A DNA stretch of 63,883 bases, the filler included, from Dugesia japonica (lineage: Eukaryota), in assembly GCA_001938525.1 (NCBI GenBank). It is 5 parts of 5 records of this genome, joined end to end, with 100 filler letters (N's around TTAATTAATTAA, not from the genome) between each part and the next. Parts side by side here need not be neighbours in the genome. Positions count along the whole stretch, not along the records: positions 55,689 to 63,883 come from MQRL01620420.1; 4 more parts are not named here. One strand, written 5' to 3'. Below the pieces are notes generated by a model. It saw only the letters and a program-made list of their open reading frames with translations. It searched no databases and had not been told where the DNA came from. Positions 55,689 through 63,883 of the stretch are shown one piece after another; position 1 is the stretch's first letter; every line of letters starts with the position of its first letter. The translations under genes were made by a program, and so were the position numbers.

Positions 55689-56450
55689 CAATTTAGATGT
55701 TTAATTATTGGATCAAGTGGATGTGGGAAAAATGTTTTACTATTAAAGATTTTACTAACACCTAATTTTATAGATTATAATAATTTGATAATCTTTTCAA
55801 CTACTATTAATCAATTTGAAATTCAATTATTATATCATGGATTAAATCAAGGTTTAAGTAAACAAGATTTAATGAATATTTTTTCAGATGAAATACAAGA
55901 TAGAATTCCTCAAGATTTAAATCCACAAGAAATAATCTTTTGGTACTGCAACTCCTTGCATTCCAGTTTACTGGGTTCTAGTGGATTAAGTAAATCAGAT
56001 AATCAACAGGAAACTGAACAGATAAACATTACACTATCTTCTAAAGCATCTGAAATTGTACCATGTGACAAGTTACCTGCTAATAAAAAGAATTNNNNNN
56101 NNNNNNNNNNNNNNNNNNNNNNNNNNNNNNNNNNNNNNNNNNNNAATGAAAAGAACCAATCAATACAGAAATCTTACTTTACTAGAGGAAGACATAATAA
56201 TTGTAATGTAATTTACATTTCACAAACTTATTATGATTTAGACAAGAATTCAATAAGAAATAATAGTAATTGTTTTATCTTCTTTAAACTAGGTAAAAGA
56301 GATAAAGATAATGTTTATCATGATTTATTTAGTAATATTTTTAATAGTAAAGAAGAATATGATTTCGAAACCAATCACCATTGGAAAACTAAATATAATT
56401 ATTTTTATCTTTACAAGGAAAAAGAAATGTTGGTAGATAATTTGTTTTAA
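55689..56450 (+). CDS. A32/FtsK-like DNA packaging ATPase (5' truncated)
   Basis: FRCLIIGSSGCGKN (Walker A, starting upstream of the ORF-track start), FTRGRHNNCNVIYISQTY, IRNNSN; Walker B falls in the N gap. Confidence 0.92.
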   Translation, partial: QFRCLIIGSSGCGKNVLLLKILLTPNFIDYNNLIIFSTTINQFEIQLLYHGLNQGLSKQDLMNIFSDEIQDRIPQDLNPQEIIFWYCNSLHSSLLGSSGLSKSDNQQETEQINITLSSKASEIVPCDKLPANKKNXXXXXXXXXXXXXXXXXNEKNQSIQKSYFTRGRHNNCNVIYISQTYYDLDKNSIRNNSNCFIFFKLGKRDKDNVYHDLFSNIFNSKEEYDFETNHHWKTKYNYFYLYKEKEMLVDNLF

Positions 56451-56567
56451 TAACCCGAGCGAAGCGAGGGTTTGTAATCTAAATCTTAAAGTTAAAAATC
56501 TTAATGCTAAATTATGTTAAAGCTAAATTATTATATATAAAAATAGAAACCTCGCTACGCTCGGTTA
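56451..56567. promoter_or_regulatory. Intergenic cassette: inverted GC-rich repeats enclosing a TATA-like element
   Basis: TAACCCGAGCGAAGCGAGGGTTT (56451-56473) and AAACCTCGCTACGCTCGGTTA (56547-56567) are inverted copies; TATATATAAAA at 56532; function inferred. Confidence 0.55.
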
Positions 56568-56569
56568 CA

Positions 56570-57193
56570 ATGCAAAGCAGTACAACTGAACAAGAATTAA
56601 TAGATTTAATAAATAGTGATAAATGTAAATCAATTAGAATTGATGGTAAAAACTATTGGATTGGTAAAAAGACTAAAGAAATATTAAAACAAAAGCACGC
56701 ATCTGGAGTTAAAACGACAGCTGGAGGAATTTTTCCATTATTAGCTTTAATACCTGGTATTTTGGCAGGAATTGGAGCTGCAGGAGGCGCAGCCGCTGGC
56801 ATTGCAAAGGTTGTTTCCAATTCAAGAGAAGCTAGTAATAAAGTTAAAGAATCTATTGAACTTGATAAAAAGAATGAATTATTAACTGAACAAATAAACC
56901 AGTTGAAAAGTAAACAATCTCAATCAACTGTTGAACCAGTTAGTTCTAATAAAGTTGATCCAGTTAACTTGAACAATAAAGTTGAGAATAAACTTCCACA
57001 GTCACAGTCTACAACTGGACAAGGAATTTATTTAAATCCTTATCAAGGATCAGCTATTCATAAATATTTAAAACCATACTTGATTAACTCTAAAGTAATT
57101 AAGAAAAAGAAATTTAAAAAAGGAATTGAAATTATACCTAGTGGCAAAGGAATATATTTGAATCCATATCATGAGAGTCCAAATAAAGCTTAA
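56570..57193 (+). CDS. Putative virion core/membrane-active protein (adenovirus pX-like) with adenain-type sites
   Basis: AGGIFPLLALIPGILAGIGAAGGAAAGIA resembles the adenoviral pX GG-FLP hydrophobic segment; two GxGIYLNPY repeats; start taken at ATG 56570, after the intergenic cassette. Confidence 0.6.
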   Translation: MQSSTTEQELIDLINSDKCKSIRIDGKNYWIGKKTKEILKQKHASGVKTTAGGIFPLLALIPGILAGIGAAGGAAAGIAKVVSNSREASNKVKESIELDKKNELLTEQINQLKSKQSQSTVEPVSSNKVDPVNLNNKVENKLPQSQSTTGQGIYLNPYQGSAIHKYLKPYLINSKVIKKKKFKKGIEIIPSGKGIYLNPYHESPNKA

Positions 57194-57198
57194 ATAAA

Positions 57199-58104
57199 AT
57201 GAATGATTGGATTGAAGATAGAATAAAAAGTTTAAAAGAACAAATTAAAGGAAGAGAGAAATATGACAAGTTAATAGTTGACCAGCTAGCTGGACAAGTT
57301 TCTTTTCCAGTTAACTGGACTAACCAGTTTTCAACTGGACAGTTTTCATCCACAGTCCAACCAGTTGGAAACAATAATTTATCAAGTGGTTTAACTGTTA
57401 AAGATAGTCCAGTAAACCTGGAACCTGTTCAGTTAACTATTAAAGAACTAGAACCAGTTGAAAGAATAACAAGTGATGTATTTAAAATAAAAAAAGAAGA
57501 ATTAAAAGTTAGTAATAAATATGAATTACCTCCAACTTTAATTCCTTATATTATTTATGACTATGATAATACTTTTGATTCTTTTAAAATTGGTTCAGAT
57601 ATTATTTATTTAAAACAAAGAAAAGAAGAAGGAGAATTAAAGAAATTTTTTCTTATAAATGGAACAAAAGAAATAGATTTTAATCAAGAAGTATTAAATT
57701 TAATGTTTGGTTATGGTTCGAATGATAATGAAGCTAAAAGAATTTATTTAAGTGGTTTTAATTTTAAAATTCCACATACAAGTAAATATATTCAAGCATG
57801 TAAGAAAAGAGGAATATTTGATGAAGAATTTAAAAAATTAAAAAATCCACCTGATTATAAAGAAGTTGATTCTATTAAAACTATTCCAACTAGTAGTGGA
57901 GAAGGTATTCCAACTAGTGGACAGTCTACTGGATACAAGAATCCAATTAAACTATTGGAAAAGTTTGTAATAGTTACTAGTGCAATAAAAGCTGGACATG
58001 ATAATCTGTCAAATGATTTTAATAAAATAATTAACAAGATGTTGGATAATAAATTAATAACTAAAACAAAATATGATAGACTAAAAGTTAAATACTTAAA
58101 ATAG
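57199..58104 (+). CDS. Conserved Polinton-like protein of unknown function (C-terminal KAGH helical motif)
   Basis: Intact 301-aa ORF; C-terminus is homologous to the remnant at 44752-44913 and precedes penton in both elements. Confidence 0.7.
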   Translation: MNDWIEDRIKSLKEQIKGREKYDKLIVDQLAGQVSFPVNWTNQFSTGQFSSTVQPVGNNNLSSGLTVKDSPVNLEPVQLTIKELEPVERITSDVFKIKKEELKVSNKYELPPTLIPYIIYDYDNTFDSFKIGSDIIYLKQRKEEGELKKFFLINGTKEIDFNQEVLNLMFGYGSNDNEAKRIYLSGFNFKIPHTSKYIQACKKRGIFDEEFKKLKNPPDYKEVDSIKTIPTSSGEGIPTSGQSTGYKNPIKLLEKFVIVTSAIKAGHDNLSNDFNKIINKMLDNKLITKTKYDRLKVKYLK

Positions 58105-58121
58105 CTACGCTACGCTCGGTT

Positions 58122-58896
58122 ATGTCTCATCAATTTTTAATATATGGTCAGGAACATGAATTAGAAACTAATTTATCTAGAGGAATAGAATTACAAGGTG
58201 AATGGGAAATTGCTTTAATCTGGTTTACTACATCCAACATGGTATTGAATATAAATAATAAAAATAATAAATATAAAATTAATGGTATTGACAAGATACT
58301 AACTCCAGGTGCATATGAAATTAAACAAATTGCAGAAAAGTTAAAACAAGATGCTCAGTCTGGAACTGGTTTATTATTAACATTTGATGTATCAACAGGT
58401 AAAGCATTATTATCTTTAGATGTAGGAGATAAAGATAAAAATTCTAATGTTAAAGAACTAAAGGTTGAGTTTGATAAATTTTCTTTTTTTCATACTATAC
58501 TTGGATTTAATGTTTTACCTGGAGGTTATTTGGTTAAGGAGGGCAATAGTTTCATTTCAGACAATAAAATTAATATTATTGACATAAATACAATTAATAT
58601 TATTTGTAACATTGTACAAGGTAATTATTTAAATAANNNNNNNNNNNNNNNNNNNNNNNNNNNNNNNNNNNNNNNNNNNNNNNNNNAAAGAATACAATTT
58701 ACTACATAGTTTACCAATGGGAACAGTTCCTTATGGATATAGGATAACTGACAGACCTGCTAATCCAATTTATTCTCAAATTAATACAAACTTTATAACT
58801 AGAATAAAATTAAATATAGTAGATGAGAATTTTAATACAATAGATTTTGATGGGGAAAAAATAAATATCCTATTACATTTGAGAAAGGTTGACTAG
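58122..58896 (+). CDS. Minor capsid protein (penton)
   Basis: GEWEIAL, PGAYEI, NIICNIVQGNY; after the N gap continues KEYNLLHS..VPYGYRITDRPANPIY..VDENFNTIDFDGEKINILLHLRKVD*; the frame break is confined to the N gap. Confidence 0.88.
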
Positions 58897-58916
58897 TCAA
58901 ATTAATACAAATTAAA

Positions 58917-59432
58917 ATGGAATATCCAACACATTGGAACATATTAGATTTTTTAAAAACATTTGGCATATCATCTACAACTAATTATGATTTATTAGAT
59001 ATTGCTAAATTTTTAAATCTTGATATTTATGTAGTAATGAAGGATGAGTTTCCAACTAGATGGAGTCCACAGCCAACTGCCAACTGTCCAACCCAGTTAA
59101 CTGGAAGTTGTCCAGCCCAACTAGTTGGAAGCTGGATAATAAATTATCAAAATTCAAATCAAAAAGGTAGTCATTGGGTTGCCTATGTACAAATGGCTCC
59201 AAGTGGAGCTTGGAAAACTAGTTATTATTTTGATTCTTATGGTTTACCTCCATTAGATTCAATTTCTAATCCAGTTAAATGGAACAGGACACAAGTACAA
59301 CCTTGGAAAACTAAAATATGTGGTATATTATGTATTTAGTTTATTTATAAAATCCAGCTAGCTGGAGTTAATGGAGGGAATTTTGATTTAATAATTAAAG
59401 AAATGAAGGAGACCTTCAAAGATTGGCTTTAA
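58917..59432 (+). CDS. Adenain-type cysteine protease with one in-frame TAG (59337-59339)
   Basis: IINYQ..GSHWVAY (His), YYFDSYG (Asp), QVQ..CG (Gln/Cys); frame continues FIYKIQLAG...DWL* to 59432. Confidence 0.9.
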
Positions 59433-59448
59433 GTTATGTATATAAGAA

Positions 59449-60690
59449 ATGACTCACAGCTTTTCAAATGTAATAATGAATAGGTTTGGGGAAACATTGG
59501 ACAATAAAAATACTAACCAATTACTAGAAGCATTTGATGGTAAAGTTGAAAGTAAAACTAATTTAAAATTAAGAATCCATGAACATGAGGAACAAGTTAG
59601 AAATAAAAAGTATGATGATAGAGAATATATTGATAAAAAGGTTGATCAACTAGTTGGAAAGTTAACTAAGCAGTTTATTGCTCAAATTGTCAAACAACAA
59701 GTTACTATAGAAACTTTAATGGAAAGTAATAAAATACAGTTGAGTGGTAGGAAAAAAGAATTTATTAATCTAAAAAGTGAAATGTTACTTCAACTTGAAA
59801 ACTTTAAACAAATTAAAAATTTTTATAGAGATGAATTTAATAACCAACATGATAAATTAAAAAACCAACTAGTTGCACAGTTAACTAGACAAATTAAAGA
59901 TTTAACAAGTAAATGTAGTGAAGAAAAATGCAACAACTTGAAAAAACGAGTTGATAGATTAAAAGAAGAATTTGATTATTATCTTCAATATAAAAATGAT
60001 CCTTTATATGAATTGGAAAAAACATTTTCTTCATTAAACCAGTTGTATAAAAAAGATAGAGAATATCTTGAAGACATTTTAAAGAAATTAAAGAAAGAAA
60101 GAAGTCAAAAGAAAATTTATTCTCCTGATTTATTCAAAACCTTTAAAGAAGAAGTAGAAAATTATTTTCCATATTTCTTAGATCCAAAAGTATCTTCATT
60201 AGAAGTAAATAAGAATGTAATATTTTATTTAACAGCAGAAAAAGAAAATGAAGAACTACCAAGTGTTGTAATTTTTAAAATGAAAAAATTAAAAGGATTT
60301 AGAGATGGGGAAGTAGTAAATAAAGGAGATGGGAAAATTTATTTTGTACTAGAGAAAATGATGGTATTAAATTTTGAATTATTAAAAGAAGAAAATGAAT
60401 TATATTTCCTTTTTAAAATTGGTAGTGAAATACATGTTTATGAACCACATCTAACCTTTAAGTTTAATAATGAAATTTTAATAAAAAATGAATCTAGTCC
60501 AGTAGTTTTTAAAAACTTTAAATTTAAAACTAATATATCACCTAAAATACTAAATATTTTCAAGATAAATACTAGAGAAATAGATGAGGGAAAATCAAAA
60601 TGGTTTAAATTTTCAATAACCATTGGTCCTGAAACTCTTTTAAATTCTTTAACTATATCAACTAAAAACTTTAGTGATGGGGTTAAATAG
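59449..60690 (+). CDS. Hypothetical 413-aa protein, coiled-coil N-half and beta-rich-looking C-half
   Basis: Intact ORF with tight spacing inside the viral cluster; no recognised motif. Confidence 0.7.
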   Translation: MTHSFSNVIMNRFGETLDNKNTNQLLEAFDGKVESKTNLKLRIHEHEEQVRNKKYDDREYIDKKVDQLVGKLTKQFIAQIVKQQVTIETLMESNKIQLSGRKKEFINLKSEMLLQLENFKQIKNFYRDEFNNQHDKLKNQLVAQLTRQIKDLTSKCSEEKCNNLKKRVDRLKEEFDYYLQYKNDPLYELEKTFSSLNQLYKKDREYLEDILKKLKKERSQKKIYSPDLFKTFKEEVENYFPYFLDPKVSSLEVNKNVIFYLTAEKENEELPSVVIFKMKKLKGFRDGEVVNKGDGKIYFVLEKMMVLNFELLKEENELYFLFKIGSEIHVYEPHLTFKFNNEILIKNESSPVVFKNFKFKTNISPKILNIFKINTREIDEGKSKWFKFSITIGPETLLNSLTISTKNFSDGVK

Positions 60691-60702
60691 ATTTAATAAA
60701 AA

Positions 60703-61461
60703 ATGAATGACCAATTAATTAGAAATCAACAAGTTGAAAAACTGTATCCCGATTTAAATAGTGATTTTAATGATAATTCAGATTTAAGTGAAAAGTCTGT
60801 TACTTGTTCCACCATTCAAGATTTGAAAAATAAATTAAACAAAACAAGAATTAAAGATTTTGAAAGTGATCTTGAATGGATAGAAGATAAACTAAAACAT
60901 TATAAAAAGTTAAAGAAAAGGTGGTCAAGATTTGATAATGGAGTTAGATTTACGGATGTTGGAATATCAACTGTAGTAGGTATAGCTTCAGGAACAATAA
61001 TATTAATGTCCACTTTATCTTTTACAATACCTTTAATAGTTACAGGAATAGTAACAGGAATACCAATTATATATTCTATTGCACATGGATCTTTAAGAAT
61101 TAGTTTAATAAAAAGTAGAATGATTAAATATTCTAATAAAATTAAATTATTAGAAGAAACTAAAAATAAATTATTCCTTTTTTATATTAAAGCATTGGAA
61201 GATGATGAATTAAGTAATGAGGAAATTAAAATTTCAAAAGATATAATTAGTAATGTAAAGACTCAGTTAGTTAGTATGTCCAGCAAGCTGGATGGTAGTA
61301 AGCAGTTACCCAGCAAGTTGGATGGTTCAGTTAACAGTAACCAGTTGACTGAACAGTTGTCCAACCAGTTGGCCAGTCAACTGGATCAATTTGCAAAATC
61401 ATTTCCAATCTTGATGAACCAGATTTCCAACCAGTTAACTGGCCAACAAGCCAAAAAATAA
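60703..61461 (+). CDS. Putative membrane protein (coiled coil, two hydrophobic segments, N-terminal LYPDL)
   Basis: Hydrophobic stretch VGISTVVGIASGTIILMSTLSFTIPLIVTGIVTGIPIIYSIA between charged helices; palindrome-derived C-terminal tail. Confidence 0.7.
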   Translation: MNDQLIRNQQVEKLYPDLNSDFNDNSDLSEKSVTCSTIQDLKNKLNKTRIKDFESDLEWIEDKLKHYKKLKKRWSRFDNGVRFTDVGISTVVGIASGTIILMSTLSFTIPLIVTGIVTGIPIIYSIAHGSLRISLIKSRMIKYSNKIKLLEETKNKLFLFYIKALEDDELSNEEIKISKDIISNVKTQLVSMSSKLDGSKQLPSKLDGSVNSNQLTEQLSNQLASQLDQFAKSFPILMNQISNQLTGQQAKK

Positions 61462-61542
61462 ATTTTATAAAAATGAACTAGGTAAAAAAAAAATATTCAT
61501 CAACAAGGACAACCCCCTTGAACCAAATCTTTTCTATAAGAA

Positions 61543-63883
61543 ATGAATATTGGTTCCAAGAATATGTTTTCTAATATGCTTGAATTGTTTTGTGAAATCT
61601 GTAATCAAACGTTTAAGTCAGACTATCATTTACAAACTCATCTCAAAGGAAAAGCCCATTTAAGGAAAGTAGAATTAACTAATGCAGGTGATGTTTGGAG
61701 AAGATGTCATACATGTAACATAAACTTTGATAATTTAGTTAATTACAATAGACATATTAATGGACGTAAACATATTGAAAAGGTTGGTCAATTAGAAGAT
61801 AATCAAAATGATGAAGAAGAAGTTGAAGAAGAATTTCCAGTTAACTGGAATATCAAAGATTTATTTAGACAATATATTAAACCTAGAGGAGAATATCAAG
61901 TAGAAACATGTCAACAATCCATGATTAAATTGAAACAAGATTTCCTAGTTTATAGAAATGAAGAACAACCAGCTATAGAAAATATACATCAATTCAATTA
62001 TAGAATTAATTTTAATCTTTTAAAAGAATATTCTTCAGACATGAAAGAAATGGTTAATATATTTATTAACAAATTTCAAAAGGTAGCAGTTTCAATAACA
62101 TGTTCTACTGCATACACAAAAGACTTTGTTGGACAAGATAGTACAACTAATCAAAGATGGATAAAGGATTATGATGCACATTCAGAGAAAATAACAATGA
62201 CTACTCAAATTAATGATACGATTGACAAAATGTTGAATCAACTTTCGGAAGATATTTTCACAACAGAGACTCAAGGATCAGGTTGGTCATTTGAAAAGTT
62301 TAATTCTTTTACAATTGAACTATCAAATTATGAATCTCTAGTTGGCCAGCTAGCTGGACAAGGTTATTTTCCATTACCTAGTGTATGGAAAAATATTCGT
62401 GGAATTCTAAATATCAAGAATCCAGAAGGAGATTTCAACTGTTTTAAATATTGTATAATGGCTCATCTTGATCCTTCTCTCAATGATTTAGTTATAAATT
62501 ATCAATTTCAATCAAATCCAACTACTTTGAATCTAAATTGGAAAGGAATAACAATGCCAATGGAAATAAAAAATATAGCCAAGTTTGAAAGATTAAATGA
62601 TTTTCAAGTTAATATCTTTGAGGTAATTCCAAATAAAACTAGACCAACAATTCAAAAACTCTATTCATCTCACATTGAAACTAATCCCCATCACACAGTT
62701 AGGAAATGTAATTTACTATTTTTAAATAAACACTCAGGAGGTCACTACATTTTAATTAGGAATCTTAACAAGATTAATAAAAAATCTAATCACACTAATG
62801 AATTGTGTATAAACTGTATGAATTGGAAATCGAATAAAGAAGCTTTAATTAATCACCAATTACTTTGTTTAAAACAGAAAGAAGCAGTTATTAAATTTTC
62901 TTTTAATGATTCATATTCTTTTAATAAATTTTACATGAAAAACAAGAATCCTTTTACAATCTACTTTGATATAGAAACCTATAAACGAAAATCTAATGAG
63001 GAATCTAACGAGGAATCTAACAATGAATTAATTCCATTCGCTTTAGGATTATATCTAGTAAGTGAACATCCATTAGTTGAAAATATTTATCAATCTTTCA
63101 CAGGACCTAAATGCATTGAAAAGTTTATTGATTGGCTATTAAAATTTAATGAGTTATTTGAAAGATTAATTAATAAAAGATATCAATCTTTTCCACTAAG
63201 TGATCGAGATCTTGAGCTAGCGTCCAACGAAAAGTGTTATTATTGTGAGTCGAATACACCACAGTGTGACTCACTTTCAATAAATCCATGGACAGGAGCT
63301 AGTAGAAAATCATCTACTTATGCACATGAAAATTGTATCAAGAAATTTGAGAATCCAAAGAATTATTTCATTCCAGTTTATGCACATAATGCTTCTAAAT
63401 TTGACAATCATTTTGTTTTTAAGGAATTATGTAAATCTCATCCTGATAAAATAAATAATCTAATTCCATTAAATGATGATGTTTACATTTCATTTTCTTT
63501 AGAAAGATTAAGATTTCTAGATTCTTTAAGAATGTGTAGTGGTCATTCAGTTGAAAAGTTGGGTCAGGATTTATTAAAAAGTAAAAATCATCTTCATTTG
63601 GATAAATTAAATCTCAAACCATCAATAGGAATCTATCCATATGATTATGTAAGTGGAAAAAATTATTCTGAAGTTAAAAAGAAATTATTAAACTTTACTC
63701 CAAATATTAAAGACTTTTTCAATTATTACGACAATCTGAATTATCTGAATCTGATTATCAAACATTTCTAAAAGAATATTCAAATTTCCCCAACTTATTA
63801 GATTATACTCTACATTACATGAAACTTGATGTAATAATTCTAGCAGACTTTTTCGAGAACTTTAGGACTTTATCACTAGATAG
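61543..63883 (+). CDS. polB: Protein-primed family B DNA polymerase with two N-terminal C2H2 zinc fingers (frameshift at ~63727; runs off the window)
   Basis: CEIC..H..H and CHTC..H..H fingers; QGSGW, LNIKN..CFKYC, YFDIET (ExoI), AHNASKFD (ExoII), RFLDS, YPYDY; shifted frame continues YMKLDVIILADFFENFR (ExoIII). Confidence 0.95.

Follow-up and report, generated by a model that had tools for sequence, protein, structure and literature searches.

Rickettsia palindromic elements (RPEs) are dispersed palindromic repeats that lie in-frame in protein-coding genes, are tolerated at permissive sites, and are lineage-specific (PMC10969869). HIP1 of cyanobacteria is a short palindrome that is over-represented in coding sequence, in several frames and beyond codon usage, and its function has been open for decades (PMC5861425, PMC4390886). 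Described here is a family of 12-bp palindromes with the consensus CCA-RY-TA-RY-TGG, hereafter called units, from what appears to be part of a Polinton-like element in the genome assembly of Dugesia japonica (GCA_001938525.1). The window is the whole stretch of 63,883 nucleotides, which joins five parts of this genome; the piece analyzed is the part at positions 55689-63883 (MQRL01620420.1; 8195 bases, 26.7% G+C, two 50-N gaps). Alignment with homologues shows each unit to be an inserted run of precisely four codons, either isolated or grouped with others, and the units occupy loops, linkers, and tails of the encoded proteins.

The units resemble RPEs in that they are inserted in-frame in coding genes at permissive sites. 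An RPE unit, however, measures roughly 100-150 bp, forms a long hairpin, and belongs to a bacterial genome. It is thus about ten times longer than the 12-bp, four-codon unit found here, which folds weakly as a single copy and resides in a eukaryotic-type virus-like element. With HIP1 the units share the over-representation beyond codon usage, but HIP1 is genome-wide, methyltransferase-linked, and located in colinear coding sequence, whereas most unit codons are extra compared to homologues. The units are also not clade-wide, unlike HIP1, and no methyltransferase gene was found inside the 8.2-kb piece. The A+T-rich mitochondrial genomes of yeast harbor G+C-rich palindromic clusters that spread and sometimes lie in-frame in genes. 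They are comparable to the units as G+C-rich palindromic islands, with the difference that they are tens of bases long and organellar instead of 12 bp long and part of a virus-like element. In templated insertion and quasi-palindrome template switching, short inserts are copied, sometimes inverted, and imperfect palindromes are corrected to perfect ones. A shared 35-nt patch and paired compensating changes among the units are reminiscent of these processes, but templated insertions are normally unrelated one-offs, whereas a single defined 12-mer family has about 28 members here. Operators of dimeric regulators are equal to the units in size and symmetry, and an identical 12-mer occurs near uvrB and uvrA in two bacterial contigs (L157 and L147). 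Those operators are intergenic and few, while the units are intragenic, many, and without counterpart in relatives. The units therefore fail defining size or context features of RPEs, HIP1, and the yeast G+C clusters, and no description of these 12-mers, or of codon-length in-frame palindromes in Polinton-like viruses, was found in the literature.

An earlier note, made from the sequence alone, had listed eight perfect copies, and all are found where it placed them (57282, 57307, 59093, 59117, 59354, 61431, 61837, and 62346), as is the 16-bp palindrome that encloses one of them. The near copies listed alongside are real as well, with one mismatch each except for that at 61341, which has two. 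The 8.2-kb piece contains 30 sites with at most two mismatches, which form a decay series (8 perfect, 12 one-mismatch, and 10 two-mismatch copies), compared to 2.19 ± 1.45 expected from dinucleotide shuffles. The coding sequence holds 16 CCAN6TGG sites, and seven of them are perfect palindromes. Synonymous-codon shuffles, which keep the proteins and the codon usage, give 5.6 such sites and 0.28 perfect palindromes, and codon permutation gives 1.1 and 0.02, respectively. The observed values are reached by none of 2000 shuffles in either control, so the enrichment suspected in the note withstands codon-preserving comparison. CCAGTT/AACTGG is the most over-represented hexamer of the piece (24 versus ~2-3 expected). 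As had also been pointed out, the units are present in seven of the eight genes and are richer in G+C than their surroundings (50% versus 27% for the whole piece). Their flanks are biased: of 20 sites, 17 have an A at +1 and 10 have a T at -1; the A after the unit may partly derive from the common GGA glycine codon. The density had further been contrasted with the other 55 kb of the window, a comparison that is void, as the other parts are unrelated.

All three frames are used to read the units, which spell P-x-x-W when in frame 0 and Q-L-x-G when in frame 2. The note had traced recurring peptides to them. In frame 1 the central TA would give a stop (TAA or TAG), and it is lost in all five frame-1 copies. 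This indicates that the units are translated under the standard code and that selection is merely a filter. The three variants of the unit differ through paired, compensating changes. Among the matches to a degenerate pattern that allows 16 combinations, eight of eight are symmetric (P ~3e-5 under independent halves, a value that makes the case look too strong if the copies descend from few palindromic founders), in agreement with the earlier claim that the central pairs co-vary and symmetry is conserved. The signal sits at the DNA level and not at the peptide level, as supported by the same 12-mers in different frames, the survival of codon-aware controls, and the co-varying halves.

Comparison with homologues marks the units as insertions. 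Unit codons occupy columns that at least 80% of the homologues lack in 73% of cases, compared to 11% of the other codons (odds ratio 22). The units had been thought to look like insertions, and they are indeed extra in PolB, the ATPase, and the protease, and in orf301 and orf252 as well. Four-residue runs that only the query possesses match the 12-mers at 55963, 58926, 59052, and 62346. The inserts have a G+C content of 42-53%, and the extra residues amount to ~110 in 8 kb, including residues in the polymerase, the protease, and the packaging ATPase. In the AlphaFold model of PolB (mean predicted local distance difference test score, pLDDT, of 72.5), the unit at 62346 is placed in a loop that follows a strand, where the pLDDT falls to 63 between 85 and 84. 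Both PolB units are in regions that are predicted to be low-confidence loops or linkers. Animal-genome proteins among the search matches served for alignments alone, including the alignment supplied to the PolB model. The most heavily remodeled regions are listed in Table 1. The C-terminal extension of orf252 contains the one true period-12 array of the unit family (61339-61375), near copies at 61280, 61310, 61361, and 61373, and the perfect unit 61431-61442, and an interrupted palindrome with a 3-nt spacer (57324-57338) lies inside the 22-codon insert of orf301, one of two unit-bearing inserts in this protein. The near copy at 59271 in the protease (59263-59283) is located in sequence common to both homologues (occupancy 1.0), with flanks that match the flanks of the perfect unit at 57307 at 86% identity. 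This site could be an original near-palindrome of the gene that acted as source or template.

The units are lineage-specific when related sequences are compared. Nine related contigs (21-27% G+C, 33.2 kb non-redundant) contain no perfect and no one-mismatch copy, and a more distant 14.7-kb relative likewise has none, which brings the relatives searched to about 48 kb. The half-site density is 8.0 per kb in the 8.2-kb piece versus 2.0 per kb in the nine related contigs. An IMG/VR scan for the 14-bp palindrome returned single chance matches only. A metagenome scan for two units within 36 nt returned 18 contigs, none of them related by protein, which include bacterial operator-like sites, a hAT-like miniature inverted-repeat transposable element (MITE) with similar subterminal repeats, and tandem arrays. 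In the bacterial contigs L157 (250-470, 2811) and L147 (6130-6260), which come from a marine-sediment metagenome, the identical 12-mer is extended to an 18-bp palindrome. This palindrome and an AT-type variant lie together upstream of the uvrB and uvrA genes as well as downstream of an RNase R-type gene, an arrangement that looks like the operator of a DNA-damage regulon. A small element with ~16-nt inverted termini and subterminal half-site arrays (spacers of 0-3 nt) is found in L156 (2560-2990), L153 (1-260), and L155 (1990-2130), and it resembles a MITE of the hAT-like type whose repeats would be bound by transposase. L163 (1-1151) consists almost entirely of half-sites in inverted pairs (spacers of 0-6 nt, 45 half-sites per kb) around a G+C-rich core and is an unrelated repeat.

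The clearest trace of the spreading process is the patch shared by orf301 and PolB (Table 1), in which flanking sequence is common to both copies in addition to the unit. Over 40 flanking positions, 26 identities are counted, whereas 20000 random pairs never exceed 24. Nearly all homologues possess the residues with which the right flank of the PolB copy aligns (occupancy 0.97), and this flank is hence native to PolB. In orf301 the copy is part of an insert, so that PolB was probably the source of the patch and orf301 the recipient. Units would accordingly spread by templated copying, either through template switching or through break repair with another copy as template. The self-complementary unit would seed this copying, as it is able to pair with every other copy whichever way round the two lie. 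Protein-level selection would then purge anything that is out of frame or contains stops. The strict symmetry and the paired changes would reflect handling during copying, as a duplex palindrome or a transient hairpin, and not a benefit to the element.

Other insertion processes were considered and rejected. Local tandem duplication, as in a minisatellite, would leave units that resemble their neighbors, but only the unit at 62346 resembles its adjacent 12 nt (9 of 12) and the others are at background. Two further in-frame period-12 tandem repeats, which are unrelated to the palindrome family, are present at 62990-63021 (2.7 copies) and 61035-61062 (2.3 copies), and they indicate that four-codon slippage also happens in the element. 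No flanking direct repeat that would represent a target-site duplication is found at 10 of 11 sites. A cut-and-paste transposon or MITE was rejected on this ground and because the flanks are not unrelated between copies. Transposon excision footprints and hairpin-opening (P-nucleotide) scars cannot explain a constant 12-mer without target duplications, and eliminated or spliced sequences are ruled out by the units being kept in frame and stop-free. The codon-length micro-mobile element proposed in the earlier note is thus borne out with regard to in-frame insertion but not in the sense of a transposon, as target-site duplications are lacking and at least one copy carried flanking gene sequence with it.

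The units may hence be selfish or neutral palindromic micro-insertions that propagate themselves through templated copying and survive where the proteins tolerate them, and not a code, a reading to which we give an even chance of being correct. Several points weigh against it. One copy of one element in a gapped assembly was studied, with no insertion seen as a presence/absence polymorphism, and the copying mechanism is drawn from a single clear patch. The alignments of orf301, orf252, and the protease use few and distant homologues (2-5 homologues, 24-43% identity), so that gap placement is uncertain by a few residues. The strict symmetry and the biased flanks would also fit binding-site selection, and a neutral process alone does not explain the constancy of the unit sequence. 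A more specific proposal is that the 12-bp palindrome is itself the propagating unit, which would multiply by pairing with other copies of itself while protein-primed replication or repair is under way and would thereby remodel loops and tails, or alternatively that the units are newly acquired genome-wide recognition sites of a dimeric packaging or condensing protein; we regard this as possible but doubtful.

The palindromes could instead act in cis, as sites at which a dimeric protein of the element, the host, or a helper virus binds DNA for genome packaging, condensation, or transcription; they would be gained by insertion and then retained through selection at places that the proteins tolerate. 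A perfect palindrome of 12-16 bp with a fixed outer triplet and a fixed center has the usual shape of a dimer site, and the flank bias and the distribution over seven of the eight genes are consistent with such a role. The same holds for the paired extended palindromes upstream of uvrB/uvrA, which carry the same 12-mer in unrelated bacterial contigs and likely act as operators, and for the weak match of an orf207 homologue to an adenovirus core-protein family. However, relatives with the same gene set have no units, so no ancestral process needs them, and decayed copies are present in frames that would permit a perfect copy. Independent reading of two half-sites would not demand the symmetry of all eight, the sites cluster at permissive protein regions instead of being spaced along the genome, and no cognate protein was identified. 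Binding sites are therefore judged rather unlikely. A structural role is less probable still, in which the units form hairpins in mRNA or in the displaced single-stranded DNA of protein-primed replication and co-variation keeps the pairing. The paired compensating differences among the three variants and interrupted versions with 3-, 5-, and 8-nt spacers would suit it, and clusters of units fold better than shuffles (z of -3.1 to -3.8), which is partly explained by the ability of any two units to pair. Isolated units, in contrast, reach only -3.9 to -4.9 kcal/mol as single-stranded DNA (z of -1.6 to -2.1) with stems of 4-6 bp and 4-nt loops, and the co-varying inner pair falls in or beside the loop of these folds. 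An Rfam search returned no family match, and the absence of units from relatives counts against hairpins as well, which makes this role quite improbable. Of the earlier suggestion of an overprinted DNA code, the DNA-level signal is thus upheld by frames, codon controls, and co-variation, while the proposed functions in packaging, condensation, dimer binding, or single-stranded hairpins are disfavored by weak single-unit folds, relatives without units, and decayed copies in permissive frames. Promoter and terminator scans of the piece remained at background level.

It is very improbable that the repeats matter at the level of the peptide, for example as sites of protease cleavage or Q-L-x-G linker motifs, with the palindromes as a by-product of codon choice. 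The peptides do contribute to the CCAN6TGG count, since 5.6 sites remain when the proteins are fixed, and one Q-L-A-G-Q-G stretch in PolB fits an adenain-type cleavage pattern. This pattern serves as a lead only, and just one of the seven Q-L-x-G sites fits it. Identical 12-mers give different peptides in frames 0, 1, and 2, the number of perfect palindromes exceeds that expected with the proteins fixed, the 35-nt DNA patch is common to unrelated proteins, and the homologues lack these peptides entirely. This explanation is largely refuted by the frame analysis. An artefact of assembly or library preparation, or chance, is barely credible. Two broken genes and two gaps along 8 kb show the scaffold to be of modest quality, but every unit keeps its frame open, the frame-1 copies are altered specifically at the center, the enrichment statistics oppose chance, and the 12-mers have no literature or adapter match. 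A restriction-type CCA-N6-TGG site was likewise a lead only and was dropped; such sites are normally avoided, not enriched.

Among the products of the element itself are a packaging ATPase of the A32 type, a protease of probable clan-CE type, and a protein-primed PolB, and all genes lie on the + strand (Table 1). The label Polinton-like is supported by the relatives from metagenomes (L164-L173), which share the gene order of the 8.2-kb piece. A double-jelly-roll (DJR)-like capsid gene adjoins the ATPase in L167 and L169, and an rve integrase is encoded in L164. Neither a DJR major capsid protein nor an rve integrase lies inside the 8.2-kb piece, which is only part of the element.

Table 1 Genes, units, and inserts of the Polinton-like piece from the Dugesia japonica assembly (window positions)
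Feature	Positions	Strand	Remarks
A32-type packaging ATPase gene	55689-56450	+	5' end cut by the edge of the piece; contains gap 56095-56144; 39 homologues
orf207, Gly/Ala-rich	56570-57193	+	homologues beside capsid or ATPase genes in relatives; near copy 56960-56971
orf301	57199-58104	+	homologues in relatives with DUF8207
Split gene orf171 + orf69	58122-58896	+	interrupted by gap 58637-58686; sole gene without a unit
Cysteine protease gene, probably clan-CE-type	58917-59432	+	one in-frame stop; perfect units 59093, 59117, 59354; near copies 58926, 59052, 59271
orf413	59449-60690	+	coiled-coil-like N-terminal half; near copies 59646-59657, 59865-59876
orf252, membrane protein	60703-61461	+	weak match to DUF1235; homologues of 181-188 aa
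Protein-primed family B DNA polymerase (PolB) gene	61543-63883	+	two N-terminal C2H2 fingers; one frameshift; 3' end cut by the edge of the piece
ATPase unit	55963-55974		one mismatch, frame 1, central TA changed; 4-residue run absent in 17/17 homologues
orf301 22-codon insert	57280-57345		lineage-specific, 42% G+C; perfect units 57282-57293, 57307-57318
orf301 one-mismatch unit	57357-57368		14-mer repeated at 61359-61372
Second orf301 insert	57408-57435		8 codons (57412-57435); overlaps interrupted palindrome 57408-57422 (5-nt arms, 5-nt spacer)
Protease loop expansion	59052-59135		16-20 residues beyond homologues, 50-53% G+C, nested and adjacent units; holds 59093, 59117
orf252 C-terminal extension	61263-61458		~55 residues without counterpart in both homologues; largely made of units
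PolB 16-bp palindrome	61835-61850		encloses perfect unit 61837-61848; disordered linker, residues 74-102, pLDDT below 50
PolB perfect unit	62346-62357		4-residue insertion; full 4-column gap in 57/58 homologues covering the site
Shared patch	57275-57309 (orf301) vs 62339-62373 (PolB)		35 nt, 91% identical: unit plus 20/23 flanking bases

The homologues of the ATPase share 35-57% identity, and most of them carry a precomputed PF04665 assignment, in line with an A32/FtsK-type packaging ATPase. The protease, a candidate clan-CE enzyme of the adenain/Ulp1-like kind, shares the ordered residues His, Asp, Gln, and Cys with two syntenic homologues without variation; Pfam, PDB, and word-based searches gave no match. 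PolB yields 2335 HMMER matches, 13 of them with E<=1e-30, and one named match with PF03175, in line with a protein-primed PolB. The best matches include proteins from mollusc, beetle, and springtail genomes. PolB opens at its N-terminus (61543-61800) with a pair of zf-met/JAZ-type C2H2 fingers (E 5e-12), an unusual addition on a protein-primed polymerase; a mollusc homologue is also named a C2H2-domain protein. In orf207, a Gly/Ala-rich hydrophobic stretch is accompanied by a short Gly/Tyr/Pro-containing peptide that is present twice and recurs in homologues. The homologue in L169 (1679-2173) has a weak precomputed match to the adenovirus core-protein family PF05829, and orf207 may be a core or membrane protein. 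Homologue searches with orf413, including an IMG/VR scan, found none, and IMG/VR scans with PolB and orf413 returned no relatives. Word-based searches for close relatives gave one distant match for PolB and none for the protease, an exact look-up of one element protein gave no record, and Pfam, PHROGs, and PDB searches contributed little annotation for the small open reading frames.

Both gaps interrupt genes. Either side of the gap in the ATPase gene aligns colinearly with the same 17 homologues, and the loss there comes to ~8 residues around the expected Walker B region, much less than the 50 N written would imply. At the second gap, the flanks match adjacent parts of single genes (254-268 aa) in L164, L167, and L169, so that one gene is concerned and almost no sequence is missing. 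The frame relation across either gap, as written, carries no information. No unit adjoins a gap, and neither gap affects palindrome finding. In addition to the in-frame stop of the protease, PolB has its homology spread over two reading frames; these breaks may reflect the decay of an integrated copy or simply an assembly of modest quality.

A separate repeat lies upstream of two genes. The 15-mer at 56553-56567 is repeated at 58109-58123, each time directly before the ATG of a gene, and an inverted partner (56455-56472) bounds an intergenic segment of ~115 nt (within 56451-56569). The segment contains three 15-16-nt tandem repeats (56481-56531) and has a folding z of -3.2, while the same place in relatives measures only ~15-40 nt and is without the 15-mer motif. 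An IMG/VR scan for the 15-mer returned single chance matches only. Possible identities of the segment are a hairpin of a promoter or terminator and another small inserted element.

Bacteria and organelles are known to harbor short palindromic repeats that have invaded coding sequence, but none is known of codon length or from Polinton-like viruses. If the units are indeed self-propagating micro-insertions, no smaller self-spreading DNA element would be on record than these units of exactly four codons, located in the genes of a eukaryotic-type virus. They would provide a compact case for deciding between selfish and functional iterated palindromes, a question that is still open for HIP1, and a natural marker of insertion tolerance in these proteins. 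It would follow that a drive at the DNA level can lengthen the loops and tails of viral proteins.

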